Assembly (NCBI GenBank): GCA_024704765.1
Contig: JAKMXF010000066.1
Location: 124,001-188,000 of the forward strand
Direction of reading: 5' to 3'
Source of the DNA: Oopsacas minuta
Taxonomy: Eukaryota; Animalia; Porifera
Length of the DNA: 64,000 nucleotides
The notes beneath the pieces were generated by a model that searched no databases, had not been told where the DNA came from, and saw nothing but the letters and a program-made list of their open reading frames with translations. The translations under genes were made by a program, and so were the position numbers. Below, in pieces: positions 8,581 through 58,300 of the stretch. Position 1 is the first letter of the stretch; each line of letters opens with the position of its first letter.

Positions 8581-9753
8581 ATGCCATATTATTTCCCAAG
8601 GAAAAGAGCTACTAAATTGGTAGGCACTTGCACATTAGCAATGATATTGGTAATTGTGTTTATTCACTTCAGAAAACTGCCTGAGATTGAGCTCCAACAA
8701 AAACACATAGAAGAACACAATGAATGGGATCTCCCAGATAACTGGAGTATTCCACCTGCATTAAGAGCTAACAGATATACATGCAACAATTTGTTGAGGT
8801 TGAGACAGGGAAATAGAAATATTACAGTAGATTATCTTACGTTAGGCATTGGAGCTCTTATATTCCTCATTGATAGGTCTAGTAGCTCAAATGAGTACAA
8901 ACTGGAGCTAGCTCGTAACTTAACACTCCTGAAGGATATATTGACTCCTAACGACTTGGTTCACGTTGTTGGCAACATAGAAGAAGTAGATAAACTAAAT
9001 GGGAGTGATATTCGCTTGTTTCTGAGTAAAAATCAATTTGAAATGTTGAGAGGTTTTGGAATTAGTTCTATATCTCTCTCAGCACCTGAAATATTGCACA
9101 GATCTTTACAGCCATTGATACCAGAAATTACACGAGAAGCTGAATCAGCTGGTATACAACTAACTGGGATAGTACCTGTTGAGAATGTTGTGCTACATAC
9201 GAAGGAGCAAGCGCAACCTTTGAGAATGCTAACCACTCAACAAGGCATCAAGGTAGGAGTTCTAGCTTATTGTGCACTAAAGGAATGTGAGATTATGACA
9301 ACGGATCTGACTCATCAACCAGCTGTTTTCTCAAATATCGTACTTTATGATATCCAAATGATTCGTACTAAAGGTGCTAGACTTGTAGTAGTGAGTATGA
9401 ACTGGGGTGTGTCAACTGACAGCCGGTACAATGATGTTTTGAGTAGAAAGCTCGCGATGGCTGGAGCAGATGTTGTAGTGGGACAACATCCGTGGGGTAA
9501 GCTAGGGCATGGATTGTATGCTACTACACTTGTTATTTTCGCTAGTGGAACAATGCTAGGCAACCAAGATTATGTAGATTATATAAGAGAATTTCTATTT
9601 TATAGAATTCGTTATGGTAGACTTGGAGACATGAAGTCAGAGTACAAAGTTATAGACAGAAGTACGTATACTGCAAAGAGTGGATGGATAGAAGTATGTA
9701 GTGATGGAGACATATACTGTATCGAATGTTTAGACATGAGAATACATCTTTAA
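8581..9753 (+). CDS. Type II membrane protein with a degenerate CapA/PGA_cap (poly-gamma-glutamate synthesis protein, metallophosphatase-fold) domain
   Basis: N-terminal hydrophobic anchor LVGTCTLAMILVIVFIHF; GIKVGVLAY, LVVVSMNWG and LAMAGADVVVGQHPW parallel the CapA motifs VxxHWG and AGADxVxGHHPH. Confidence 0.7.
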   Translation: MPYYFPRKRATKLVGTCTLAMILVIVFIHFRKLPEIELQQKHIEEHNEWDLPDNWSIPPALRANRYTCNNLLRLRQGNRNITVDYLTLGIGALIFLIDRSSSSNEYKLELARNLTLLKDILTPNDLVHVVGNIEEVDKLNGSDIRLFLSKNQFEMLRGFGISSISLSAPEILHRSLQPLIPEITREAESAGIQLTGIVPVENVVLHTKEQAQPLRMLTTQQGIKVGVLAYCALKECEIMTTDLTHQPAVFSNIVLYDIQMIRTKGARLVVVSMNWGVSTDSRYNDVLSRKLAMAGADVVVGQHPWGKLGHGLYATTLVIFASGTMLGNQDYVDYIREFLFYRIRYGRLGDMKSEYKVIDRSTYTAKSGWIEVCSDGDIYCIECLDMRIHL

Positions 9754-10021
9754 TTTGTGAATTTATTATGTAAATTAAATCTTATTTCTCTTCTTAATCC
9801 TCTTCCGATATCATGTAATTTGTATTCCTTTAACAATCAGAATTGATTTTCTCATACGCGAATGAACTACAAATATCTAAATTTAACCAAGTCTACATAA
9901 CTAGTTTACAAATATACGAACAACAACAATTATTATGTTTATTATACAAACTGTACTGAGGTGAATACAAATTGTTATAAGAATAAGATGTATTTTTGCT
10001 GCATTACTCTCTTAATATTTT

Positions 10022-10270
10022 TTATTCATTGTACTGTGTTGTATTGTAACTCTTGCATCTGACAGAATGAGGAAGGAAATACCTCTGATATTAGCGATAT
10101 AGAGCAATTAACGTACAAACCTTACTAGATTATTATAGTTAAAGCACAGATACATGACTCAGGGTTGATGCATTGCAATTACCACTAGCAAGTTTGTATA
10201 TATGAACAAGGGTCATAGACACACGCACTGATTCTGTCAGAGTTACAATACAACACAGTAAAATGAAAAA
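10022..10270. repeat. Inverted-repeat (MITE-like) element with arms of about 40 bp
   Basis: TACTGTGTTGTATTGTAACTC..CTGACAGAAT near 10031-10068 is the reverse complement of ATTCTGTCAGAGTTACAATACAACACAGTA near 10231-10260; no clear TSD. Confidence 0.6.
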
Positions 10271-10594
10271 GCTCTAGATTGAGTAGATTCGCCTGTTAAT
10301 TCATAAACAAATCTGTGGATGTTCAAACACCTCATACAAGGTATATTAGAATACGAAGAAGTAGAAAATGTCAAAATCTGTCTTCTATTTTCTATTTGCG
10401 ATCTATGTCGGTAAAATATTTGTATATAATAATGAAATGTTTATCAAGCCTTTTCTTTTGTTACAAACCCAAATAATAGAACATCCGATTACGGTTACAC
10501 TTTAATTATTGACTCATATAATAATAGAGTAAACTGTTGTAATATCTTTACTTATTTATAGATATTAGATATTAATAGTGTGTGGTGCGAATAG

Positions 10595-11638
10595 ATGCTA
10601 TCATATATCACTGATTTCACAGAGTTTGAAAGGGGTTACTTTTGGCTGAATTGTGACAAACCAACAACTCTGTGTAAAATAGCAGTTTGTCTAAGGAGTG
10701 AAAATGAAGATAAAGTATTGAGTACAAGATACTCAAAACCTCATGAAAAGGAACATGCTGAATTAACAGCACTTACATATGTAGTAGAAGAATTAGACAC
10801 AAAACTACGTTTTATCCCACTAGACAATTCTGCAGTGTTAGATGTTATTATGCGGATTAATAATAGTCCATGCGCCAGATGTCAAGATCCACTCATAGAA
10901 CTTTTGTTGGAAATCAAGAACATGATTCCTCGAGTACATTTTAGACTAATTATGTTTTTCTCAAATCTGTATAACAAGAGTGATAAAGGAATCGAACAGT
11001 TTTGCGATTGGATCATGGAATTGGTTGAAAATAAAATTGTTGTCATTGTTTGTCCACTTGTTGTCTATAAAATGGTTGAGAAACCTGAAGATTTTCCAAA
11101 ATCTCAGGTTCATGAAATGGTTGAATTCGGTAGGGATTGTATTGACAATTTCAGGGAATTACTGTCCGATATTGAAGATCGAGAAGGTTCATTTCATGTC
11201 TCGATAAGTCACCAATTCTTTCGAAAAGATTATCAAGTTTACATGAGATTATTTAGTTGGGATGATCCTCATTTTTTCTCGATATATCCAAAAGGTGTGT
11301 CTATTCACCTTTCTAAACTAACGATAAATCCTGAGTTCTACCATCATAAAGCAAAACCACGGAAAGGTTTCCAAACTAATATAGCTGCAACTCAAAGCTA
11401 CACTATCCCCACTGAAACTTACAATAAACCTGACCAAAGCTCTGCAGAACCTTCCCAAAAATCCTACAAGAAACAAGTTCAGAGCTTTAAAAAGCAAAAA
11501 TTTTATAAATACAAGAAAACTCAGAGCTCCAAAGTAGCTTCAGCTGCACCAGCTTCTGCAGGTGTTTACAAGAAAGATAAGATTGCCTCATCAACAGCAC
11601 GGTACATGCCTGCGAAGAAAGCCAAATATGATAACTAA
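10595..11638 (+). CDS. AID/APOBEC-like zinc-dependent cytidine deaminase with a basic C-terminal tail
   Basis: HAE (10754-10762) and NNSPCARC zinc motifs, N-terminal FTEF, TTLC strand and FFSNLY segment follow the AID/APOBEC order FxxxF..T.LC..HxE..SPCxxC..F.x.LY. A TAG just before the ATG could be a splice acceptor. Confidence 0.8.
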   Translation: MLSYITDFTEFERGYFWLNCDKPTTLCKIAVCLRSENEDKVLSTRYSKPHEKEHAELTALTYVVEELDTKLRFIPLDNSAVLDVIMRINNSPCARCQDPLIELLLEIKNMIPRVHFRLIMFFSNLYNKSDKGIEQFCDWIMELVENKIVVIVCPLVVYKMVEKPEDFPKSQVHEMVEFGRDCIDNFRELLSDIEDREGSFHVSISHQFFRKDYQVYMRLFSWDDPHFFSIYPKGVSIHLSKLTINPEFYHHKAKPRKGFQTNIAATQSYTIPTETYNKPDQSSAEPSQKSYKKQVQSFKKQKFYKYKKTQSSKVASAAPASAGVYKKDKIASSTARYMPAKKAKYDN

Positions 11639-12134
11639 ATAAATATTACATATAATTTGCTACTACTAGCTCTATTTAGTAATTCCTAAGTTTCACTTAC
11701 CTTTTCTACTAACGTATAACTTTTCGAATTGAAACTCTGTTTCTCTCTTATATTATTTAAATATATTTATCAATTATTTATTGTTTTCATGTTATTATTT
11801 ATTGATGTGTGTATTAAATAAGATTCTTCTTATTAGAGATTCCTTATATATACTGAGCTATAGTATAGTGTAGGTTTTTGTAATACAAAAACCACATAGC
11901 CTCATTCGAAAAGGTGACGTTCATTAATCCGAAGAAATGGCCTTTCCTCGAAGATAGAAAAACTAATACAAAAAAGCTGTACTAGTATATCTGAGCCATT
12001 CATATAAGTTTTCACTAAAGTAAATGATTTGAAATTTTAATATTGGGAATCATATACTATTAATAAGCTTCAAAAGCACATAATAAATAAGTAAAAAATA
12101 GTCAAGTTTTTGGTAGCTCTAAATAGTTACTTAT

Positions 12135-12866
12135 TTAATCAAAATAATTTGGGAATATTGAAATATAATGTGGGTTATCCCATGTATGTGACGCTTGGTG
12201 AATAGCATTTGTCTCAAAGAAAAATTCATGACTTGTCTTGATATTCCAACTACTGATTACATACTCGATTTTGTTCAATAGTTCCCTGAAGTCTTCTTTA
12301 AGTTTACTGTCCCAATAATGGCTGTCTTCTACATAAGAATATGTTAGATTCCTTCTTCTCGGTACCATTGCACATACAATAATAGGATATAGCCGGATGA
12401 TCACTCCCGATTTGACTAATTTTATAATCCAGTTGCTGTATTCTTTTAGTGCTTGTTCATAGTCTAAATGGCCAAGATAGAAATGCGAGAAAAAAAGATT
12501 AAGAAAAATCAATTCTCCACGCAATAAACCTTGGATTTGAGAAATTATTTGATATATATAACTTTGACAGTCGATACATGAACTGTTATTTAGTTTGATG
12601 CTTAGATGGAACTCAGTATTTCCTGTAACAGGTAATCTACCTAAAGAATGTAATCTCTCTACTCTGCTGTATATGTGATCAAGTACAAATTCTTCAGCAT
12701 GAATATGTTGATCTGGATCATTGAGAGATGATTGAAAAATGGTCGTTGTATTCCCATAATTGATAATGTGTAAAGACATCCTACATACAGTCATTCGAGG
12801 CGGTTCTGATATTTGCCAGTAACAATCACATTCGAAATCGGTGAAATTCCTGATAAACTCGAACAT
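12135..12866 (-). CDS. AID/APOBEC-like cytidine deaminase, paralog of 10595-11638
   Basis: HAEEFVL and LNNSSCIDC motifs, FTDF, MTVC, FFSHFY; shares the C-terminal S/TWDxPHxxSIxP segment with the + strand paralog. Confidence 0.8.
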   Translation of the reverse strand: MFEFIRNFTDFECDCYWQISEPPRMTVCRMSLHIINYGNTTTIFQSSLNDPDQHIHAEEFVLDHIYSRVERLHSLGRLPVTGNTEFHLSIKLNNSSCIDCQSYIYQIISQIQGLLRGELIFLNLFFSHFYLGHLDYEQALKEYSNWIIKLVKSGVIIRLYPIIVCAMVPRRRNLTYSYVEDSHYWDSKLKEDFRELLNKIEYVISSWNIKTSHEFFFETNAIHQASHTWDNPHYISIFPNYFD

Positions 12867-12909
12867 TATCTTTGCTATTAAACTAAAATAAAAGATATTA
12901 TGTTGTTTA

Positions 12910-13068
12910 GGGGCCGTTCAAACGTTACGTAACGCTACAAGGGGAGGTTGGTGGTATGCGACGTGTGACAGCCCCATTCTTTTGTATTACAAAACGGTGA
13001 AAAGGAGGGACACAGAGAAGGGGGTAAACATTTAAGGAATTTTGCGCTATGTACGTTTGAACAGCCCC
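12910..13068. mobile_element. PIF/Harbinger-type MITE, 159 bp, 44 bp upstream of the minus-strand deaminase start
   Basis: GGGGCCGTTCAAACGT ... ACGTTTGAACAGCCCC with TTA on both flanks. Confidence 0.8.
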
Positions 13069-14578
13069 TTAATATTTTAACAAAATCACATACAAAATGT
13101 TAGCACATGGGTCGTATTCTTCCGTTGAGACATCTTTTTAATATTCTGCAATACAGTCTTCGGTCCCGGCCCGACGCAGACTCAAGACTTTATTATAACA
13201 CTATCACCAAATCCAACCTTGAGTAATGTAATTGAAAAGTAATTGTACGTAATTGTAACATGTGAAAAGATTTAGTAATGAAATTGTAATTGTAACGGAG
13301 AAGATGATGTAATATTCATTGTAACGAGCCTTTGGTTAGTCGCTTCGCTATGAACTCGCGCTATGCGCCATATGGTATACTTTTTGTTCCAAATTGGCGG
13401 TCCCTATGGGGCCGTATTTAGGCAAATTAGATTTAGTTAATTTCATTATATCATAAAAAATATTAAATTTACATATGAGAAACTTGAAAATTCGGATTCA
13501 GCGTACTGGATTACTCCTGTGTAGCCGTTTAGAGCAAACCTGTACGTATATTTTGAGATTTGGCTGATTTGTTTACTTTATATTCATAGATCAACAATAA
13601 ATTTATAGTGTGGCCATGTACATGTGCATCCAGTAGGGGCTTATCAAATATTTTGATTGCTATATATGTACACCCTCGCTAATCCGAACAGCACTGCTAA
13701 ATTATGTAATATTGTACAGTAGACTCCGTTTAATAGAGCCGCCGGTTAATCGGGTCACTGCCAGAAATAGAACCATACAAAAAGTGCATATATACTCTGC
13801 GGCATAGGTTTGCTAAATCTTCTTTGAGTTGTGATATCGTCGCCTGTAAATTAGAGTCTGCAGCCCTACAAACTTATTTGTTTGAAACACAATTCCATTA
13901 GGTAGTATCAGGTCTATTTTTACAAAATTTGATATTGGGGAAGGTTTTATTTGCAATAGCAGACTAGCTCAGGGATGCGGGTATACCTATTTAATATCTC
14001 CTTGATTCCACACCAGTATATTGGCATTTTATTAGCTCGAAAATCGGATACGATAGTATACTTTAGGAACATCGCGATTTAATTTACCTTCTTCTAATTT
14101 TCCAGCTAAAATATATGTTTCTTCAATAATACAAAATAAATAATCAATTAGTCAATAGTCTCTCATGCTAATAGTCTAGTCCGGCGGCAAAAATTCCGCT
14201 ATTCTTCTAACTAATCAGGAATATCAGTAATAGTTTGAGTAATATTGCTCAAAAATCTTTTGAAATTTGTATGTCCATTATTGATGTGGTTCAACACTTG
14301 TTGAAAATTAACAATTAACAAGTCAGTGGGTTCAATTATAACTTGAGTATTTTGGAAATTTCCCAAATTAACTTTCTAGCAATGATTTGTCAGATATGTG
14401 AATATTACATAATATCTTTTACCAGAGTAAAATGATAACATTTCTTATAATTAGCATAAATAATGGTTCATGAACTACATCTGATTCTATGAATATTAAA
14501 ATTAATGGTTTTCATACTAACTTTAACGGTATTTAAAGGACATCAATATATTTCCAGTATAATATCAGTATCAGTAAA

Positions 14579-15637
14579 ATGCCTTTCTTGATGCTCTTAG
14601 TCGAATTGTCTCCCGTCATAGTAATACCATATATGGTCATGTTACTGTTCATTGTTTGCTATTTGGCTTATCGTAAATACAAAATTAGAATTCAAATCAG
14701 AAATGTCCCATCTTCAACAATTCTACCAGTTGACCTTGCAAAAGTTAAGAAGAATCTGGAGATAGATAATTTAGTGTATACATTCCTCTTAATCTTAGCT
14801 GTATTAGAATTATCATGCAGTGTAAGTTCAGGGATAGATGCGGTCTGTCAATTAGACCTAAAGAGATCTAACAAATCATCATCTAGTCAAATTGTCGTCA
14901 CAAATTATCGTCAAATTATCTTGGTAATTGCCTTAATATTCCCGGGTCTGGTAATTACTGTAACATCTTTACTTTTGATCATATTAAGGAGAGTATATTT
15001 AAATATTCCATATAAAAATTGGATCAAAGGCTATTTATTGTATATTCTACTCAGATCATGTCTAATATTAATACTAAGTTGTATTACCTTTACCTTAGGC
15101 TTTGCAAAGATTATATCATTCCTGTTCAACATCCTTGATTTCTATATCTACTTTTCTAGCAATCACAAATTCTATCTTTTATTGAAAGGTAGAAGAGAAG
15201 AATCTCGTTTACATTATACACGGAATGACTATCGAAAGAAACGTCGAATTGTCAAACAATATAAGTATGCTCAAATCTTCACTACTACCATATTTTTACT
15301 GTATTTGGTTTGTGGATATTTATTGTCAGTCGATTCAGTGTTTAGTATCTTAATTTACCGAAATACTTTATTGGACATTTTGTCTTTAAGCTTGGGTAAC
15401 ACAATCTCTACTTCATATATTGATATCATTTTCTTAATAAGAATCACATTGACATTTATTGAATACATCGTAGTAATGACGGCTGAAATAATGCTAGCAT
15501 TTGTGTATTTATTTGTTTGTGTTGGTATTGTGTACAAGATTATCAGAGATCAATATAAATACAAATATATAAACGATTGGCTGACGAAACCGTTAATGGT
15601 AAGGTACAGAGAAACATTAGCTTACCCGTCATTATAA
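14579..15637 (+). CDS. Uncharacterised multi-pass membrane protein (about 7 hydrophobic segments)
   Basis: 352-aa ORF with about seven long hydrophobic stretches separated by basic loops (RKYKIRIQIR, LRRVYL, YRKKRRIVK); no family motif recognised. Confidence 0.7.
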   Translation: MPFLMLLVELSPVIVIPYMVMLLFIVCYLAYRKYKIRIQIRNVPSSTILPVDLAKVKKNLEIDNLVYTFLLILAVLELSCSVSSGIDAVCQLDLKRSNKSSSSQIVVTNYRQIILVIALIFPGLVITVTSLLLIILRRVYLNIPYKNWIKGYLLYILLRSCLILILSCITFTLGFAKIISFLFNILDFYIYFSSNHKFYLLLKGRREESRLHYTRNDYRKKRRIVKQYKYAQIFTTTIFLLYLVCGYLLSVDSVFSILIYRNTLLDILSLSLGNTISTSYIDIIFLIRITLTFIEYIVVMTAEIMLAFVYLFVCVGIVYKIIRDQYKYKYINDWLTKPLMVRYRETLAYPSL

Positions 15638-17141: not shown

Positions 17142-18023
17142 ATGGCGATAAACGAATCAAAGAATTCAAAAGCTACTCGTAAGTATGTTGAAGTGGAAGA
17201 ATGGGTACTGAACTATTCTCTCAAGAAGCAGCCTGTCATAGCTGTAGGGAAGAAAGGGAGAGCTAACAACGAACTATATGATGCTAGAGGTCTAGCTATA
17301 TATGACCCTTATCAGCTGGTATACATAGCTAATTTGGGTCACTGTTGTATACAAGTTGTTACATTTGAGGGAAACTTCGTCACTAATTTTGGGCAAGACA
17401 TACTCAAGGACCCATGTGGTATAGCAGTAACAGAGGATCATGTCTTCGTTACGGACCTTTCTCATAATGCTTTGTTCCAATTCTGTGATTTCAAGCTAGC
17501 GAGGGCTGGTCTCAAAGGATCAGCAGAGGGAAAGTTATGCCGTCCGCGTGGACTTTGTAAAGACTATAACGGAGACGTGTATGTAGCTGATAGTAACAAT
17601 AACAGAGTTTCTGTTTTCTCAGAAGAACTTAAATTCTTAAATAGTTTGGGTACTCAAGAGCTAAGGTTTCCTGTAGATGTAAAAGTAATTCTAAACAGCA
17701 TCCTAGTGCTAGACTGGAACCCACATTGTGTCCACTTCTACTCGAGAAGCGGACACCTGATAAACTCATGCATTTCTCAAGAGATGCATGGGATGGTATG
17801 GTATCCATACTTCTTCTGTTTGGATCCAGCAGGGAATATTCTCATTACCGATTATTACCGTCACGATATCAAGATACTCTCTCCCTCAGGAGAACTAATC
17901 CACACCATAGGGAAGAAAGGATATAGAAGAGGGGAATTAATTTATCCATTGGGTATTTGTATTTCACAATTAGGAACAATTTTTGTTCTATCTAATAAGG
18001 ATAATGTTTTACAAATATTCTAG
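17142..18023 (+). CDS. NHL-repeat beta-propeller protein (TRIM-NHL-like propeller, no RING, B-box or coiled coil)
   Basis: Repeats such as PRGLCKDYNGDVYVADSNNNRVSVF, PCGIAVTEDHVFVTD and PYFFCLDPAGNILITD; terminal LQIF. Confidence 0.88.
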   Translation: MAINESKNSKATRKYVEVEEWVLNYSLKKQPVIAVGKKGRANNELYDARGLAIYDPYQLVYIANLGHCCIQVVTFEGNFVTNFGQDILKDPCGIAVTEDHVFVTDLSHNALFQFCDFKLARAGLKGSAEGKLCRPRGLCKDYNGDVYVADSNNNRVSVFSEELKFLNSLGTQELRFPVDVKVILNSILVLDWNPHCVHFYSRSGHLINSCISQEMHGMVWYPYFFCLDPAGNILITDYYRHDIKILSPSGELIHTIGKKGYRRGELIYPLGICISQLGTIFVLSNKDNVLQIF

Positions 18024-24593: not shown

Positions 24594-25838
24594 TCAGAAT
24601 AGCTGTATACAATTGGTAGGGTTACGGGATGCAACTATGATCCTATTGTCAAGATCAATGGTAAAACCTGTTGGATGAATGAACTCCCCCCGTTTCTCTC
24701 CTTCCTCACCTATCTTATGGATCAACTCTCCTTTGTAAGAAAACACAAAAACACAATGAGATTCGAAATCAGAAAGCAGAATATTGGATGCTCCATCAAT
24801 GAATATGTAAATAGGCAGTTTGACTGTATTATCTCCACCGCAAGCAATCATTTCCCTTACTGGTTGATGAGAATAATTGTACAGGATCAAACATGGACTC
24901 TGGCGACACAATACTGCGATTTCTTCTGACATCAGTTTGACACAAACGGGCCTATGCAATTTATCAATAAATGAATGGAAGCTGAGATCCAAATTCAAAC
25001 ACTGGACTCTGTTATTCTCTCCATCACTCACGTATATCCGTTTTCTTTCAACAGATACGTCAAGACCTCTTGGGGAACCGAATTCTGTTGCTACATTATT
25101 CTGGAGGAATTTTCCAATAGTAGAATACACATTCAGATGGTTCCCTATTATTTGTGTTACATAGACTTTGTCTTGCTTGATGCATATGCCAGCTGGCCCT
25201 TCCATTTTCTCGTTGAAGAGGAATAGAAACTCGAAGGAAGAATTGAATACTTGCACACGGTTAAAACCCATATCACAAACATACAAATATTTAGTTACTG
25301 GATCAACAGCTAAACCCTCAGGATAAACGAATACAGCAGGATCAGGTATAGATTTACTGTGCTTCCCGAACACTTTAACTGGACTTGTTATGCTACCGTA
25401 ATCCGGTATACCCCTACCTTTAGTGTTAAGCAGTATTTTACCTACATCTTTAAGTTTCAATTCTAATTCATCCTCCCAATCAAATGCTATACTTTTGTAC
25501 GTGTCTTTAGCAGTTTGTAACTTAGTTTCTAATTCTTTTATTCTGGATTCAATTGGAGATAAGCTCTGATCGAGCATTTCTTTATTCTCATTGTCTTTGA
25601 AGGTTGAAATAAGATTATCTTTAGAGATTTTCAGCTGATTTACCTTATCGCATACCCCTTCTCCAGTGTAGTCATCTTCAACCTGTTTTAACTTAGCTAG
25701 AAGTTCGGTTTCTCTAGCTTCTAGATGATGACGGGCTCTAGTGAATTTATCGCGTATTTCTACACGTACCTCCTGCACACGTGAAATAAACGGATCAATA
25801 TCTATATCTTTACTCCCGAGACTACTCAGACTAGCCAT
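24594..25838 (-). CDS. Coiled-coil plus NHL-repeat protein, copy 1
   Basis: Heptad-rich N-terminus, then PEGLAVDP..YLYVCD..FNRVQVF, PRGLDVS..IYVSDGENNRVQ and PTGFTID..NRIIVA repeats. Confidence 0.92.
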   Translation of the reverse strand: MASLSSLGSKDIDIDPFISRVQEVRVEIRDKFTRARHHLEARETELLAKLKQVEDDYTGEGVCDKVNQLKISKDNLISTFKDNENKEMLDQSLSPIESRIKELETKLQTAKDTYKSIAFDWEDELELKLKDVGKILLNTKGRGIPDYGSITSPVKVFGKHSKSIPDPAVFVYPEGLAVDPVTKYLYVCDMGFNRVQVFNSSFEFLFLFNEKMEGPAGICIKQDKVYVTQIIGNHLNVYSTIGKFLQNNVATEFGSPRGLDVSVERKRIYVSDGENNRVQCLNLDLSFHSFIDKLHRPVCVKLMSEEIAVLCRQSPCLILYNYSHQPVREMIACGGDNTVKLPIYIFIDGASNILLSDFESHCVFVFSYKGELIHKIGEEGEKRGEFIHPTGFTIDLDNRIIVASRNPTNCIQLF

Positions 25839-26721: not shown

Positions 26722-27966
26722 TCAGAATAGCTGTATACAATTGGTAGGGTTACGGGATGCAACTATGATCCTGTTGTCAGGATCAATGGTAAAACCTGTT
26801 GGATGAATGAACTCCCCCCGTTTCTCTCCTTCCTCACCTATCTTATGGATCAACTCTCCTTTGTAAGAAAACACAAAAACACAATGAGATTCGATATCAG
26901 AAAGCAGAATATTGGATGCTCCATCAATGTATATGTACATAGGCAGTTTGACTGTATTATCTTCACCGCAAGCAATCATTTCCCTTACTGGTTGATGAGA
27001 ATAATTGTACAGGATCAAACATGGACTCTGGCGACACAATACTGCGATTTCTTCTGACATCAGTTTGACACAAACGGGCCTATACAATTCATCAATAAAT
27101 GAATGGAAGCTGAGATCCAAATTCAAACACTGGACTCTGTTATTCTCTCCATCACTCACGTATATCCGTTTTCTTTCAACAGATACGTCAAGACCTCTTG
27201 GGGAACCGAATTCTGTTGCTACATTATTCTGGAGGAATTTTCCAATAGTAGAATACACATTCAGATGGTTCCCTATTACTTGTGTTACATAGACTTTGTC
27301 CTGCTTGATGCATATGCCAGCTGGTCCTTTCATCTTCTCGTTGAAGAGGAATAGAAACTCGAAGGAAGAATTGAATACTTGCACACGGTTAAAACCCATA
27401 TCACAAACATACAAATATTTAGTTACTGGATCAACAGCTAAACCCTCAGGATAAACGAATACAGCAGGATCAGGTATAGATTTACTGTGCTTCCCGAACA
27501 CTTTAACTGGACTTGTTATGCTACCGTAATCCGGTATACCCCTACCTTTAGTGTTAAGCAGTATTTTACCTACATCTTTAAGTTTCAATTCTAATTCATC
27601 CTCCCAATCAAATGCTATACTTTTGTACGTGTCTTTAGCAGTTTGTAACTTAGTTTCTAATTCTTTTATTCTGGATTCAATTGGAGATAAGCTCTGATCG
27701 AGCATTTCTTTATTCTCATTGTCTTTGAAGGTTGAAATAAGATTATCTTTAGAGATTTTCAGCTGATTTACCTTATCGCATACCCCTTCTCCAGTGTAGT
27801 CATCTTCAACCTGTTTTAACTTAGCTAGAAGTTCGGTTTCTCTAGCTTCTAGATGATGACGGGCTCTAGTGAATTTATCGCGTATTTCTACACGTACCTC
27901 CTGCACACGTGAAATAAACGGATCAATATCTATATCTTTACTCCCGAGACTACTCAGACTAGCCAT
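26722..27966 (-). CDS. Coiled-coil plus NHL-repeat protein, copy 2
   Basis: 414 aa, differing from copy 1 at 9 residues (counted from the ORF track). Confidence 0.92.
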   Translation of the reverse strand: MASLSSLGSKDIDIDPFISRVQEVRVEIRDKFTRARHHLEARETELLAKLKQVEDDYTGEGVCDKVNQLKISKDNLISTFKDNENKEMLDQSLSPIESRIKELETKLQTAKDTYKSIAFDWEDELELKLKDVGKILLNTKGRGIPDYGSITSPVKVFGKHSKSIPDPAVFVYPEGLAVDPVTKYLYVCDMGFNRVQVFNSSFEFLFLFNEKMKGPAGICIKQDKVYVTQVIGNHLNVYSTIGKFLQNNVATEFGSPRGLDVSVERKRIYVSDGENNRVQCLNLDLSFHSFIDELYRPVCVKLMSEEIAVLCRQSPCLILYNYSHQPVREMIACGEDNTVKLPMYIYIDGASNILLSDIESHCVFVFSYKGELIHKIGEEGEKRGEFIHPTGFTIDPDNRIIVASRNPTNCIQLF

Positions 27967-31177: not shown

Positions 31178-33640
31178 ATGGAATACACATCAGACAGCTA
31201 TAGGCGTAGTAATAGAAAATTCTTACAACAACCGATGGGTTTAAGCAGTGGTTCTCAACCTTTTCTGGCCTTCCCCCCCTCATGAAGTTTAATCTCCCTT
31301 TTGGCCCCCCACCCTCTCTCCAAATAATTTGATATTTATTTGTTTTAATTCAAATTAACTGTAATTAATGCTAACCTTGTAATTGCTTATTAGATTCTAA
31401 TATTTCAATATCTGTACTATAACTTGATGATGATATCCTTAAATCTTCTCTGAAGTCAAGTCGCCTGCGGTGTTTTGACCTAAGAAAATTTGCTGAAGAA
31501 AACGTTTTCTCACAAAAATATGTTGTTGGAAATGGAAGCAAAAGCAATTTTTCAGCTGTTTTTAAAAGATTTGGTGCTACCCCCTTCACTAAAAACCAGA
31601 ATTCAGTTTGTTAGCACAAGAATATTTAGCTTTTGTCTCCTCATTTGCCTGTAAATATAGCAACTCCTCTACTAGTATGTTGTCTAAGTCCATCATATCT
31701 TCTAGTGACATATCCATCGGGGTTAGCAGGTATTTAGGGATTGATGGAACGTCTGAAAAGCGATTTGATGCCATATTATTCACACGTCGATTACGTATTC
31801 ACAATTGAATACATAGTATTTAGTGTCATACAAAAGCAAATTATATTTGTCAGATGTATGCCATCTTTTCGAACCCTTACATTGTAACACTTACAAAGTA
31901 TTAACAATAATTATGTCTGAGTAAGTTTATCGACGTATAATGCAAATGGGTTTTTAAAAGAGCGAGGAATTGAATACAAAGATGTAAAATAAGTGGCGAT
32001 AGCGAGGAGCCTCCTCTGACTAAATTATTTACGCACACCCAGGTATAGATGGTTCTCTCCGAATATGTATCCCCCCTCTTCGGTATTGCCATCCCCCCAA
32101 TGGAGGGATATCCCCCTGGTTGAGAAGCACTGGATTTAACTATTCTAAATATAAAGTGAAAGAAAATACAACATACCTCAGATGTGCTTTATAAAAAAAC
32201 GGGTGTAAAGGGACAGCTAAATTAAAGTTAGAAAATAATTTGATATATCCCAGTTCAATTCATTACCATGGTAATGATGAGTATAAATCAGGAGTTTATG
32301 AATTGAAGACCATATGCAAGAAAAGGGCTCAAACTTCTCAAGACAATTTAAGGGAGATTTTCGATGACGAAACAAGAACGAGTCTGTTTGCAAGTGAAAT
32401 TTCTTCCAATGAGTGTGAGTCTTCTATGTACCGTTCTAGGAGAAAATTGGAACCTAAGATCCCCCTTACAGCTATAGAATTCTCAGTTATGCTACCCGAA
32501 TCTACTTTTGCGACTCACCACAAATTTACTGTCACGACTAATAACCATACTGCTGTTGTCTTTTATCCTCAACACATGAAAAATTACCTATCAGAAATTT
32601 CCAAAATTCAGTCAGATGGGACATTTTATACAGCGCCAACCCAATTCTCCCAATTATGGACGGCATTTGTGGTAATTGATCGACATGCACTCCCAGGCAT
32701 ACATTGTTTAATGACGTCAAAAGATCAAGAACTCTATACTGCAATAATAGCCAAGATCCATTCTCTCCTTCGAGATTTCAAACCGAAAATCTCTATTTCT
32801 GACTGGGAACCAGCATCGCGAAATTGTTTTAAAGAAATTTATCCCACCATTAAAAATCAGGGATGTTGGTTCCACTTTACCCAACGTATCTGGGTCAAAA
32901 CTCAGAAGCTCGGGCTAGTTCAGAGTTTTCATGTAATCCTGAAACTGCCAATTTCATAAGTAATCTCATGGCAATACCATTTCTCCTAGCAAGTTTAATT
33001 CGTCCAATTAATACATTCCTCCAAGTACCGGATTCAACAAATCTAGAATCAGGCAAATTGGAGCAACTTCGTAAAACTTCAAGAAAGGGTGGATTCCTCA
33101 AATAAATCCCGAGGAGCTTTCTATCCATGAAGCTAAAATTACTACCAATAATGCTGCGGAAAGCTATCACGCAAAGCTAAAATCTATCATTAAAACTCCT
33201 CATTCAAGAGTATGGAATTTTCTGAAAACTCTCACAATATGATAGAAGATATAGATAATGAAATGGGGAGATTGAGACTAGGTCATAGCACTTCTAGGTC
33301 GAGGAAATCAAAGCATGTTCTAAAGGATCAACAACGCGAGGTTATTAAGGTAAAGTTCAGAATTGGCGACTTGACTCCTTGGCAGTATCTAAATGCAATG
33401 AGCAACACTATTGGTGGTACCTTTACTGAATTTGAATTCTCTGATACTGATGAGTCAGACACTTCAGACAATGAAAGCGAGAATCCAGTAGTAGAGAATA
33501 TTTGTGTTATATGTCTGATGCCGCGGACAACAACTTAGGTATTTCTACCTTGTAAGCATGCTAATTGTTGTGCAGCATGCAGCGAGAGAATAGAGGAATT
33601 GAATCAGACGTGTCTACTCACTTCATTTATTTCGAAATTG
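31178..33640 (+). pseudogene. MULE transposase pseudogene: FLYWCH-like finger, MULE DDE domain and C-terminal RING finger; interrupted by a hAT insertion, frameshifts and stops
   Basis: DGFK|YSKY...YLRC...GCKGTA...HYH; IQSDGTFYTAP, ISDWEPA..N.F...YP...GCWFHFTQ; TNNAAESYHAKLK near 33140; CVIC...*VFLPCKHANCCAAC...TC at about 33500-33615. Confidence 0.88.
31246..32132 (-). mobile_element. Non-autonomous hAT (Charlie/ZBED5-like) element, 887 bp, nested in the MULE
   Basis: TIRs CAGTGGTTCTCAACC / GGTTGAGAAGCACTG; 8-bp flanks GGTTTAAG and GATTTAAC (6 of 8 identical); residual dimerisation-domain ORF LPFPTTYFCEKTFS...RSKHRRRLD...DLR at 31371-31589. Confidence 0.88.
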
Positions 33641-55397: not shown

Positions 55398-58300
55398 CAG
55401 TGGTTTAAAAGGGCAGTTAGTAAAGAATAGCTATTTTGGTGTAAGATAGCCATATGAAATGTATTATTTACATATAGATTATTATATATAAGGAACCAAT
55501 ACATCTTGTCATAACAAGTATATGGCCTAAAATTTCCAAGTTATGACGTCATTGATATATGTGAAATTTTAAATTTTCTTCAATAAATACATTTTACTCG
55601 ACTTTATTGCCATGAAATATATTAATTACATATGGGTTATCCGTATTTGGCCATCACCTTGAACTTAAAATTTTGTTGTAGGGCTTGTATTTATAGAGTT
55701 ATGACGTCACACATATGATGGAATTTATCTTATTGATTTACAAAATATACATTATATTCATACTTAAGTTCATGATAGGCAATTTGTATTGGAGGTTAAG
55801 GTCGTGAATAAAGTCTGCATACTAGTTTTCTGATTGTTCATAGCATTGCAGCATTTAGATCTCGTTGTGTGTCCAGATTGACCACATCGTTCACAAGTCA
55901 AAATTCTTCGATGGTTGACTAAGGTTGGATCACTTTGAGAGGTTAATCTGACGAAGATATCCATAATATTGGTCTCAAAACTAACTTTACGAGCTAAATT
56001 CTCCCGATATTTTCTAACTAATTTGTTGCATGATTCTGTGCCTTCTTCTGAAAATGCCTTTAAGCCATAGCTAGAATTCGACTCACGTATTAACTCCTCG
56101 GAATGGGCCAAGAGCTTGTGCAGGGTTGGAGTCATGCTAGCCCAGGGGAAAGAATCTAAGATCACAAGGTAGGTATCCTTGCACAATTTCCCCAATTCCA
56201 AAGTGTTAACTTTGTGACTTGAATTGAAAACCCGAAGAATGGCTGAAAGCTGAGTATGTATCTTTGATAAGATTGGGCGATATTTTATTGCTACAGTTGA
56301 TAGAATGCATTCAAGGTATTCAGTTTCATCAGAAAAGGCTCTTCTAGCAACATTCCCTGTTGAGGTGGTTCCACCGCTAGAATTAGGCTGGTCAACCTTT
56401 AATCCTGTCTTCTCCTGAATAAATGTTTGAAGGAATTTCATTGACTCCTTGATAACTGGTGAAGTTGGGGACCAGGTAAACTTTTCGATGCGAAGATGAT
56501 ATACCAGCAAATTGAACCACCTAAAATTGGTTTAATTATGTGAAGATAAATTCTGAATGATTAATGGAGTACAAGATTACTTACCTAAATACGCCTGCGT
56601 ATGAATGAAGTGGAGATGCTGGATGTATGTTAATCTCTTAAATTGGTTGATGAGTTAAATTGAAGCGTTCATTAGTCGAAAGAGCAAAGAACGACTCAAA
56701 GTCATCAATGTGCGAAAATAACTCGATTGCATCTGTGATATTTCTGTTGATGGGGAACCCTTCAAGAACTAAATTCCGGTCCTTCAAATCTTTATGTGTG
56801 GGAGTGCACATCTGACAACTGGCTCCTCCAGCTCCAGAGAGAATGGCTGCCATCTTCCCGTCAAACATTGAGCGGATAATATCGACATTGACAACACCAT
56901 TTCTAAAGGAATCCCATTTTGCAACATCGCTGTATCGGGATTAATCATAGTTTCCATGAAGGAACGAATATTTTCTTCGCATTCTGTCGCAGCGCAGAGA
57001 AAAATAGGTCTTTGAGAGAAGGGTGAATTAGGGGATTTATTCTGCCAAACAATCCTGTTTGTTACTGTGTGGATGGAGATGGGCTTGAAACGAAACGGAA
57101 TGAAGTTTTTGGTGAAAGTATTAGTTGTCTGCTGGTTGTAGATAGTGTGACAACCAGAACCATCTAAGCCATCTGCGATTTTAAATGTGAGTGGGAATTC
57201 TTCACTTGTGGGGCGATCTACCATTGACAATATTCTTTCCAGGGTTTTCTGAACTTGAAGAAAATATGGTGCGTGTATACCTATTGGTTTAGCTGGATTA
57301 GGGTATAAAGTTATACTGGATCCCGAAATCATGACATCTCTCAGATTAGCTAGCTTGCTGTAAGATGGGAAATGTATATTGTCTGGTAGAAGTGTTTGAC
57401 GTAGTTGAGTGTATTTTCGTCTGCCCACTTCAAGTAAATCCAGCAGGAATAAGGCTTTATCAACTGGAACATGCTTGTTACTGAGGTTACAGAATCCTCC
57501 GCTGACAATAATCTCTTTGGCTACAGTAGCAACCTGACGATTATTCTCCTCATTTGCCAATAGTTGTAATGAGAGTGCTGCAATGCTTATTTCTGTAGTA
57601 TTCTCAATAACTGAGAGTGACTTAATGCATTCTAGCAGACTTGACAATCGAATACGCTGTTGTTGCAGAGAGAGATCATCAAGATGCTTCCTATGACTCA
57701 CTGAATGAATGGGAACTTCACCATCATCAGAAGACGACTCTAGTAAATCAGAATCACGATTTTTCTTTAACTCAGGTTTCATGGAAATGTTAGAATGCCA
57801 CCATTCTCCTTCTAAACAATCTAAAGATCTCTTCGCCTTCTTGAATCTGTCCCGAATTCTTAACAGCAACGTTTCCAAGAGTTTCGTATTATCTGAGTCT
57901 ATTTCAAAGTGTTCTTTGAAATATTTTGTCGTTTTCAAGACACAATTATTATTGTCTTTCAGGATTCTTGCCAATTCAAGGCGGGACTTTGGGAAAGTTA
58001 ACTCTTCTGTCATTGTTTTCAAGAAATTCCGAAAAATATGTTGTATTATTCAGTAGATTATATATATATAGGTAAGTATAATAAATTTCAAGAACGAAAT
58101 TCAATACTATTTCATTCCATTGTTGTAGTATGCTACAATGGGAATTTCCTAGCAACGAAAAGTTGTAATGGAATGTCATTGAAAATTATAGGTTGCGCAC
58201 TGTTTCGGGTTTTGTGGTTTTAGATTATGTTTTTAGGAATCGTAATGTGTGCATCCGATTAATTTTGCGCTGTTGTTTTGTGTAGTTTATTTTTCCTGAC

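Follow-up and report, generated by a model that had tools for sequence, protein, structure and literature searches.

Two convergent deaminase genes of Oopsacas minuta

The window analyzed in this study comprises 64,000 nucleotides of contig JAKMXF010000066.1 (hereafter C66; positions 124,001 to 188,000 of the forward strand, assembly GCA_024704765.1) of the glass sponge Oopsacas minuta, with a G+C content of approximately 34% and numerous single-exon open reading frames (ORFs). Two of these, referred to here as A and B, encode AID/APOBEC-like deaminases. Gene A occupies positions 10595-11638 of the plus strand, as a single-exon coding sequence of 347 amino acids (aa) with a TAG in frame immediately 5' of its ATG. 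Gene B (12135-12866, minus strand) is also a single-exon coding sequence, and its 243-aa product consists of the deaminase domain only, without a tail. The genes are convergent (tail-to-tail), with a stop-to-stop distance of exactly 496 bp. This 496-bp spacer (11639-12134), 75% A+T, is a common 3' region with candidate poly(A) signals on both strands: AATAAA at 11638 and ATTAAA at 11813 on the plus strand, and ATTAAA at 12134 and 12036 together with AATAAA at 11798 and 11777 on the minus strand. An Rfam scan of window positions 9000-15000 gave zero matches. BLASTP aligned A and B end to end over 241 residues with 26% identity (E 2e-31); judged by this similarity, which is far above chance, they are true paralogs with low identity outside the motifs.

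The deaminase domain of A (10595-11314, aa 1-240) was modeled with AlphaFold2 at a mean predicted local distance difference test score (pLDDT) of 90.8 and a predicted template modeling score (pTM) of 0.91. The elements of the model follow one another as helix 1, strands 1 and 2, helix 2 (bearing HAE), strand 3, helix 3 (bearing SPCxxC), strand 4, helix 4, strand 5, a long helix, and two extra short strands. Translation and an alignment of 30 family sequences place the HAE motif at H54-A55-E56 (10754-10762), where the His is the predicted zinc ligand and the Glu the predicted catalytic residue, and the second motif at S91-P92-C93-A-R-C96 (SPCARC, 10865-10882), whose Cys93 and Cys96, invariant in the family, are the remaining predicted ligands and which aligns with the SPCxxC of APOBEC2 and APOBEC3G. 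The segment FFSNLY ends at 10972 with Tyr126 of loop 7 (10970-10972), which aligns with the Phe or Tyr of SRLF in APOBEC2 and ARLY in APOBEC3G. The model of B was similarly confident (pLDDT 89.8, pTM 0.89) and has the same succession of elements from helix 1 to the long helix. Its corresponding motifs, on the minus strand, are H56-A57-E58 (HAE, 12693-12701), S95-S96-C97-I-D-C100 (SSCIDC, 12567-12584), and Tyr130 of loop 7 (12477-12479), where FFSHFY ends at 12477. Here a Ser takes the place of the usual Pro before the first Cys, and the same SSC motif was found in P0022 and P0030, which belong to the subfamily of B, and in P0013, from another subfamily. Loop 7 comprises about 9 residues in the model of B versus 5 in that of A. 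Across the 30 sequences, the His and both Cys are invariant, and the Glu and the loop-7 Tyr are present in 29 and 28 sequences, respectively.

Beyond its deaminase domain, A carries a basic tail (11315-11635, aa 241-347) of 107 aa with an isoelectric point (pI) of 10.1 and 23 Lys or Arg residues. Its last seven residues, KKAKYDN (11615-11635), resemble a nuclear import signal, and KKAKY fits the K-K/R-x-K/R pattern of classical monopartite signals of this kind. The proteins A, P0002-P0004, P0008, P0010, and P0011 all end in K(K/R)AKY plus two or three further residues, and related endings were found in the paralogs C288 and C312_5. From its sequence, the KKAKY ending of A may be a nuclear import signal or a docking motif. 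A crude hydropathy test detected no hydrophobic core of the signal-peptide type in the first 35 residues of A, B, or any other family member. Met1 is conserved in the family and leads directly into helix 1 in the models, and those of A and B both start with helices before strand 1.

A sequence-only reading of this DNA had described two tail-to-tail paralogs 496 bp apart, with low mutual identity outside their motifs and without signal peptides, and our data agree with it on all these points. It had also assigned zinc binding to HAE and (P/S)CxxC motifs. HAE and both Cys are indeed present in A and B; the ligands, however, are the His and the two Cys, and the Pro or Ser that precedes these Cys is not among them.

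The exact protein of A is present in NCBI and UniRef, and an exact-sequence look-up of contigs bearing A, aimed at transcript assemblies, returned nothing. The exact protein of B was absent from a collection of 15 billion sequences, and a word-based protein search with B gave no match of similar length; thus, B appears to be missing from the annotation of O. minuta. Its kin surfaced through tblastn on loci fetched through A and through the profile search described below. Upstream of B, 40 bp from its start codon, lies a small transposon, a miniature inverted-repeat transposable element (12906-13072, approximately 165 bp, with 20-nt terminal inverted repeats), of which at least 40 further copies with 75-90% identity are spread over many contigs. 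It presumably sits in the promoter or 5' untranslated region of B. Approximately 325 bp upstream of A, an inverted repeat (10022-10270) has 32-nt arms (10022-10053 and 10239-10270) that are 94% complementary and 185 nt apart. It was considered as a transposon and rejected, being present as a single copy in the genome.

Relationship to known deaminase classes

In Pfam searches, A fell close to the cut-offs of several AID/APOBEC-like deaminase (AAD) families. In hmmscan it stayed slightly below all of them, with 26.3 bits on APOBEC3 (cut-off 27), 26.1 on SNAD4, 25.9 on NAD1, and 24.4 on APOBEC_N (cut-off 25), and a six-frame scan gave 25.5 bits on APOBEC_N, above the cut-off of 25. The scores of B were all below the cut-offs (APOBEC_N 20.0 bits, cut-off 25; NAD1 18; SNAD4 15.6). 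Several of their kin score above the Pfam AAD cut-offs, namely P0002 (26.4), P0010 (33.6), P0011 (31.3), C312_5 (39.9, SNAD4), and C288 (45.9, APOBEC_N).

A family profile built from the 30-sequence alignment gave a clearer picture. Searched against all PDB sequences, it matched APOBEC2 best (E 1.4e-6), followed by APOBEC3G, 3F, 3H, 3C, and AID. Below E 0.1, only APOBEC2, APOBEC3, and AID chains were found, and the first matches of other kinds were T4 dCMP deaminase (E 0.11) and TAD3 (E 0.41). In these alignments, HAE, SPCxxC, and [S]-x-L-Y of the family coincide with their counterparts in APOBEC2 and APOBEC3G. A search of 1.84 billion representative proteins with the profile gave 152 matches at E ≤0.001, 29 of them at ≤1e-30; among the 102 matches outside the family, 96 fit AID/APOBEC Pfam families and 4 a TadA-like family.

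The predicted folds pointed in the same direction. All of the top 50 PDB matches listed by Foldseek for the models of A and B were AID/APOBEC chains. A VIA-align structural search with the model of A placed AID (Z 11.8), APOBEC3G (11.7), APOBEC1 (11.3), APOBEC3H (10.7), and APOBEC2 (9.6) first; after a clear drop came TadA and ADAT2 (both 6.5) and dCMP deaminases (approximately 6). The mark of AADs is the position of helix 4 between strands 4 and 5, so that strand 5 runs parallel to the sheet, together with a strongly conserved loop-7 aromatic residue, unique to AADs, that projects into the pocket and limits it to a pyrimidine; TadA lacks this aromatic and has a small residue at the position (PMC5889660). 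This helix-4 topology was found in both predicted models, with strand 115-124, helix 130-145, and strand 149-154 in A, and strand 120-126, helix 136-152, and strand 156-161 in B. The motif of TadA is EPC, unlike the SPC of the family.

By sequence profile, predicted fold, and loop-7 aromatic, A and B are AID/APOBEC-like deaminases, as the sequence-only reading had proposed. These three lines of evidence favor AID/APOBEC over the tRNA adenosine deaminases of the Tad/ADAT type and the free-nucleotide deaminases, a grouping with which would have refuted that reading, and neither A nor B has a small loop-7 residue or finds TadA or ADAT2 as its best match. The core fold is common to all such enzymes, and dCMP_cyt_deam_1 matches A weakly (17 bits, E 0.004); in view of the gaps in profile E values and Z scores, the loop-7 aromatic, and the SPC motif, it is nevertheless exceedingly unlikely that A and B are tRNA or free-nucleotide deaminases.

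Animal AADs have been split into classical clades and secreted SNADs (PMC5889660). SNAD4, the only sponge clade named in that study, is restricted to sponges, has a signal peptide, and shows lineage-specific expansions, and a secondary loss of the signal peptide is described there for SNAD3. The family of A and B resembles SNAD4 in its sponge hosts, its lineage-specific expansions, and its similar Pfam scores. SNAD4 is among the best Pfam matches of A (26.1 bits), P0010 (33.8), and C312_5 (39.9), and the nearest proteins outside the family also score best on SNAD4. However, A (26.1) and B (15.6) stay under the PF18750 cut-off of 27 bits, and assigning clades by the best Pfam family had to be abandoned since the AAD models cross-react: one vertebrate-type triple-domain protein reaches hundreds of bits on APOBEC2, NAD1, NAD2, and SNAD4, with 438 bits on the last. 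SNAD4 is secreted; in the family, by contrast, a signal peptide was seen in no member, and the tail of A ends in a motif resembling a nuclear import signal, an indication that the protein is intracellular. The family was not assigned to SNAD4 because of this missing signal peptide, a distinction drawn from the published description of SNAD4. That A and B are members of this secreted clade, with a signal peptide lost secondarily as in SNAD3, is improbable.

With the vertebrate AID, APOBEC1, APOBEC2, and APOBEC3, which are their best profile and fold matches, A and B have in common HAE, SPCxxC, the placement of helix 4, a loop-7 aromatic within [AS]-x-[LIF]-[YF], and a domain of approximately 200 aa. 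Tandem gene arrays and fast evolution are features that the family holds in common with APOBEC3. Nevertheless, identity to the vertebrate enzymes is only 10-20%, and A and B are single-exon genes. The family lacks the Trp of the vertebrate SWSPC motif, which is replaced by Asn (N-N-S-P-C, with Asn90 near-invariant), and the vertebrate Arg that ends strand 4, in whose place stand Asn124 in A and His128 in B (residue roles from PMC5889660). It adds approximately 40 conserved residues with two short strands beyond the long C-terminal helix, which the vertebrate enzymes do not have, and A, in contrast to vertebrate AID/APOBEC proteins, bears the long basic tail ending in KKAKY.

Classical invertebrate AADs offer another comparison. 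Those of sea urchin and Lingula are described as innate immune mediators (PMC5956068), and bivalve proteins from Dreissena and Mercenaria (e.g., KAH3740635.1 and XP_045211247.2) were recovered as distant matches of the family profile. Like the glass-sponge proteins, these AADs appear non-secreted and show lineage-specific expansions. They are distant from the family (profile E 1e-6 to 1e-13 versus ≤1e-30 for most full-length members), and no clade-specific inserts common to both groups were evident. No paper joining APOBEC with glass sponges was found in the literature searched, and the O. minuta genome paper (PMC10280926) makes no mention of deaminases or APOBEC.

Family members, divergence and genomic surroundings

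Six-frame searches of the O. minuta genome (61,460,524 bases in 365 contigs) retrieved, besides the C66 pair, five intact tandem copies and a catalytically dead relative on contig C312 and one gene on contig C288, that is, eight intact-looking copies and one dead copy in total. The dead relative (KAI6650304.1, 624 aa) lies next to the C312 array in opposite orientation; HAE and PCxxC have disappeared from it, and a long helical tail has been acquired. The C288 gene (KAI6653235.1) is canonical-looking, with HPE and SPCNNC and 46 bits on APOBEC_N. The array genes belong to the same family as A and B, and the C66 pair differs from them in its contig, its position outside the array, and its convergent orientation.

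A word search with A retrieved 11 relatives with 44-66% identity, all in ENA assemblies and on contigs of 4.5 to 849 kb. Four assemblies (ERZ25071281, ERZ25766962, ERZ25072730, and ERZ25069837) contain the six of these that were traced as well as P0030 and P0163, which are B-like; the source organisms of these assemblies are presumably other glass sponges. Among the 1.84 billion representative proteins, close relatives were found only in Oopsacas and a few ENA assemblies, one of which is syntenic with Oopsacas. The suggestion of a lineage-specific clade, which the initial inspection of the DNA had put forward as a guess, is thereby borne out. Outside the family, the nearest proteins make up a cluster with many two-domain members, and at least some of the cluster comes from a tandem array of assembly ERZ25070530. 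This separate array (L028:6500-18500) of two-domain deaminases of 430-480 aa lies beside an integrase-like gene.

In a maximum-likelihood tree of 46 sequences (LG+G4), the family proper was monophyletic (support 100/98), with the C288 gene as its long-branch sister. Ten members make up the subfamily of A (100/99), the others being C312_2, P0002-P0006, P0008, P0010, and P0011. The closest partner of B is P0022 (100/99), and P0030 joins these two at the next node (93/95). P0022, a 236-aa gene product from a 12-copy array of ERZ25069837 (L024:7786-8493), is 45% identical to B, and A is 52% identical to the array member C312_2. If the sister gene on C288 is set aside, B is the most divergent intact Oopsacas member of the core clade, with 25-33% identity to the others. 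A and B thus belong to two subfamilies that arose before these species split, so the pair is not an inverted local duplication. The possibility of a recent local duplicate pair was rejected on the same grounds, each of the well-supported subfamilies having members from other assemblies.

The surroundings of these genes change between species. At locus L025, a RUN-PX gene, a 616-aa minus-strand gene, seven plus-strand deaminase genes, and a G6PD gene follow one another. In Oopsacas, a G6PD gene (C312:177785-178834) stands directly after the array and is 93% identical to that of L025, and with the matching gene order this identifies L025 as orthologous to the C312 array. Array sizes vary, with about 12 tandem deaminase genes in ERZ25069837 (L024:1-13500) and 7 in ERZ25071281 (L025:4800-14300). 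The A-like genes adjoin gamma-glutamyltranspeptidase genes in two assemblies (L022 and L023) and an NHL gene and reverse-transcriptase fragments in a third, and in Oopsacas the orthologous transpeptidase gene lies on contig C188, where no deaminase was found. The B-like genes lie inside an array in one species and beside a Mutator transposase in another, with no A-like gene within 10 kb. Among the seven relatives' loci compared (L021-L027), neither a convergent arrangement like that of A and B nor clear synteny with the window was seen. As the genes of the family relocate between species, the tail-to-tail arrangement of A and B is probably incidental.

At the orthologous array locus, deaminase identity is only 21-47% with respect to A and 26-33% with respect to B, in contrast to the 93% identity of G6PD. 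By the Nei-Gojobori method, the ratio of nonsynonymous to synonymous substitution rates (dN/dS) was 0.32 for A versus P0002, at a dS of 1.2 that is near saturation, 0.53 for A versus C312_2, and 0.65, 1.16, and 1.50 for the youngest duplicate pairs in the relatives. The two highest values, 1.5 and 1.16, come from the duplicate pairs of L023 (10001-10903 and 14252-15037) and of L026 and L027, in which dS is 0.02-0.04 and substitutions are few; ratios above 1 may reflect positive selection after duplication. Overall, the ratios, which are rough since dS is saturated in most comparisons, are consistent with purifying selection on the fold and relaxed or positive selection after duplication.

Conservation is uneven along the protein. 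Apart from the catalytic residues, the invariant or near-invariant positions (in A numbering) are Asn90, Ser91, Pro92, Phe122, Ser123, Tyr126, Trp139, Leu143, and Pro154. The most variable segments are loops 1, 3, and 4, strand 2 and the turn joining it to strand 1, and the loop that follows the long helix, and lengths range from 0 to 12 residues in loop 1 and from 2 to 9 in loop 7. A like pattern of variable loops is seen in arms-race clades (PMC5889660). A and B belong to a fast-evolving, non-secreted, and previously undescribed family apparently specific to glass sponges, of a general kind already known from other clades.

Other genes of the window were also inspected. Upstream of A, a plus-strand ORF of 390 aa (8581-9753) carries a PGA_cap domain (bacterial-type poly-gamma-glutamate capsule synthesis, 47 bits) and a possible N-terminal membrane segment. 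This gene near A and the transpeptidases beside A-like genes at L022 and L023 both concern gamma-glutamyl chemistry, which may be a coincidence. Between B and the first NHL gene, a plus-strand ORF of 352 aa (14579-15637) has hydrophobic membrane-like stretches and no Pfam match, and it weakly resembles (27% identity, E 8e-6) an ORF of L026 that lies downstream of a B-like gene. NHL-repeat genes are located at 17142-18023 (plus strand), 24594-25838 (minus), and 26722-27966 (minus). Genes of this type were found near deaminases at three of the four non-array loci examined, namely the window, C288 (L020:1816-3078), and the A-like pair of ERZ25071281 (L021:820-2055); the C288 neighbor combines a TRIM-like coiled coil with NHL repeats, and the exception is the transpeptidase locus (L022/L023). 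Because NHL repeats are hugely expanded (1549 first-look candidates), this adjacency, for which no significance can be claimed, serves as a lead only.

Several traces of mobile elements were noted. A MULE transposase domain is encoded at 32240-32959 (plus strand). Of two adjoining minus-strand ORFs (55770-56510 and 56784-58022), one has a weak RAG1-core match (23.6 bits, cut-off 25), and a 412-aa ORF of no known family adjoins it; from its sequence, the RAG1-like ORF may be a remnant of a Transib-like transposase. The O. minuta genome is poor in recognizable retroelements, with only 23 RVT_1 matches at E ≤1e-10 in 61 Mb, a mixed-looking set in which many carry internal stops.

Proposed function and its significance

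We consider it fairly probable that A and B, each with an intact, non-secreted deaminase domain of the AID/APOBEC type, edit C to U in single-stranded DNA or RNA, probably in defense. In this proposal, zinc would be held by His54, Cys93, and Cys96 in A and by His56, Cys97, and Cys100 in B, with Glu56 and Glu58, respectively, as the predicted catalytic residues. Tyr126 of A and Tyr130 of B would narrow the pocket to a pyrimidine, and both enzymes would convert cytosine to uracil in single-stranded DNA or RNA. Their main targets would probably be viruses or mobile elements, as for APOBEC3 and other AADs of invertebrates, and they are members of a family that duplicates, relocates between species, varies most in its substrate-binding loops, and evolves far faster than its neighbors. 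The basic tail of A probably directs the protein to the nucleus or adds affinity for nucleic acids. The missing tail and longer loop 7 of B make it probable that this protein acts in another part of the cell, prefers another sequence context, or differs from A in both respects.

Several observations weigh against this proposal. The protein of B is absent from the public protein sets queried, and B has a Ser in place of the near-universal Pro before the first zinc Cys. Two residues typical of the vertebrate enzymes, the SWSPC Trp and the Arg that closes strand 4, are missing from the family. The deaminase domains are acidic, with pI values of 5.3 (A) and 5.9 (B), and the sequences do not discriminate a DNA from an RNA substrate. 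The short branch of A and its dN/dS of approximately 0.3, in a data set where saturated dS makes such ratios rough, also fit a conserved housekeeping role in editing. Some members of the superfamily, such as APOBEC2 and APOBEC4, are not known to have deaminase activity.

Alternatively, A and B might be AID/APOBEC-fold proteins with a conserved endogenous role instead of a defensive one, such as editing at specific sites of endogenous sponge mRNA or DNA (the examples being APOBEC1 and AID) or non-catalytic nucleic-acid binding (as proposed for APOBEC2). The terminal branch of A is indeed short (0.18), with a dN/dS of approximately 0.3 versus P0002, and its tail motif is conserved across species. 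In addition, the Ser-for-Pro exchange of B is also seen in its subfamily members P0022 and P0030, pointing to a maintained specialized function, and the family includes a conserved catalytically dead member. Nevertheless, the catalytic triad remains complete, together with the glutamate and the loop-7 tyrosine. Moreover, turnover in copy number, relocation, arrays of 7-12 copies, and divergence far above that of G6PD are typical of conflict-driven genes rather than of housekeeping editors, so an endogenous role without defense is rather unlikely. That one or both genes, B being the likelier, are untranscribed relics with an open frame kept by chance would agree with the absence of the exact B protein from the public collection, with its word search without a match of similar length, and with the small transposon 40 bp upstream of its ATG. 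However, B keeps an open frame of 243 codons and all family-invariant positions except for the Pro-to-Ser exchange, itself common to members of its subfamily. Its terminal branch is short in comparison with that of its nearest relative P0022 (0.35 versus 0.78), and its structure model is confident. A relic is very unlikely.

In vertebrates, AID/APOBEC enzymes serve antibody diversification and antiviral hypermutation, and to our knowledge few such enzymes have been assayed outside vertebrates. As small, single-exon genes, A and B should be easily expressed, and they offer a natural comparison between a protein with a conserved tail resembling an import signal and a bare domain with a different loop 7. 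An intact, non-secreted, and fast-evolving glass-sponge family would show that intracellular enzymes of the AID/APOBEC type exist also in sponges, and it bears on the proposed early split of secreted and classical AADs.

A broader and more speculative possibility, which we regard as doubtful, is that glass sponges have an intracellular mutator system of the AID/APOBEC type of their own, distinct from the secreted SNAD4. Such a system would comprise nucleus-directed members with a tail, such as A, tail-less members with altered loops, such as B, and a conserved, catalytically dead coiled-coil partner, possibly together with the expanded NHL/TRIM-like genes. If this were true, the split between tailed and tail-less members would correspond to two compartments of action, and non-secreted immunity based on nucleic-acid editing would date back to one of the earliest animal branches.

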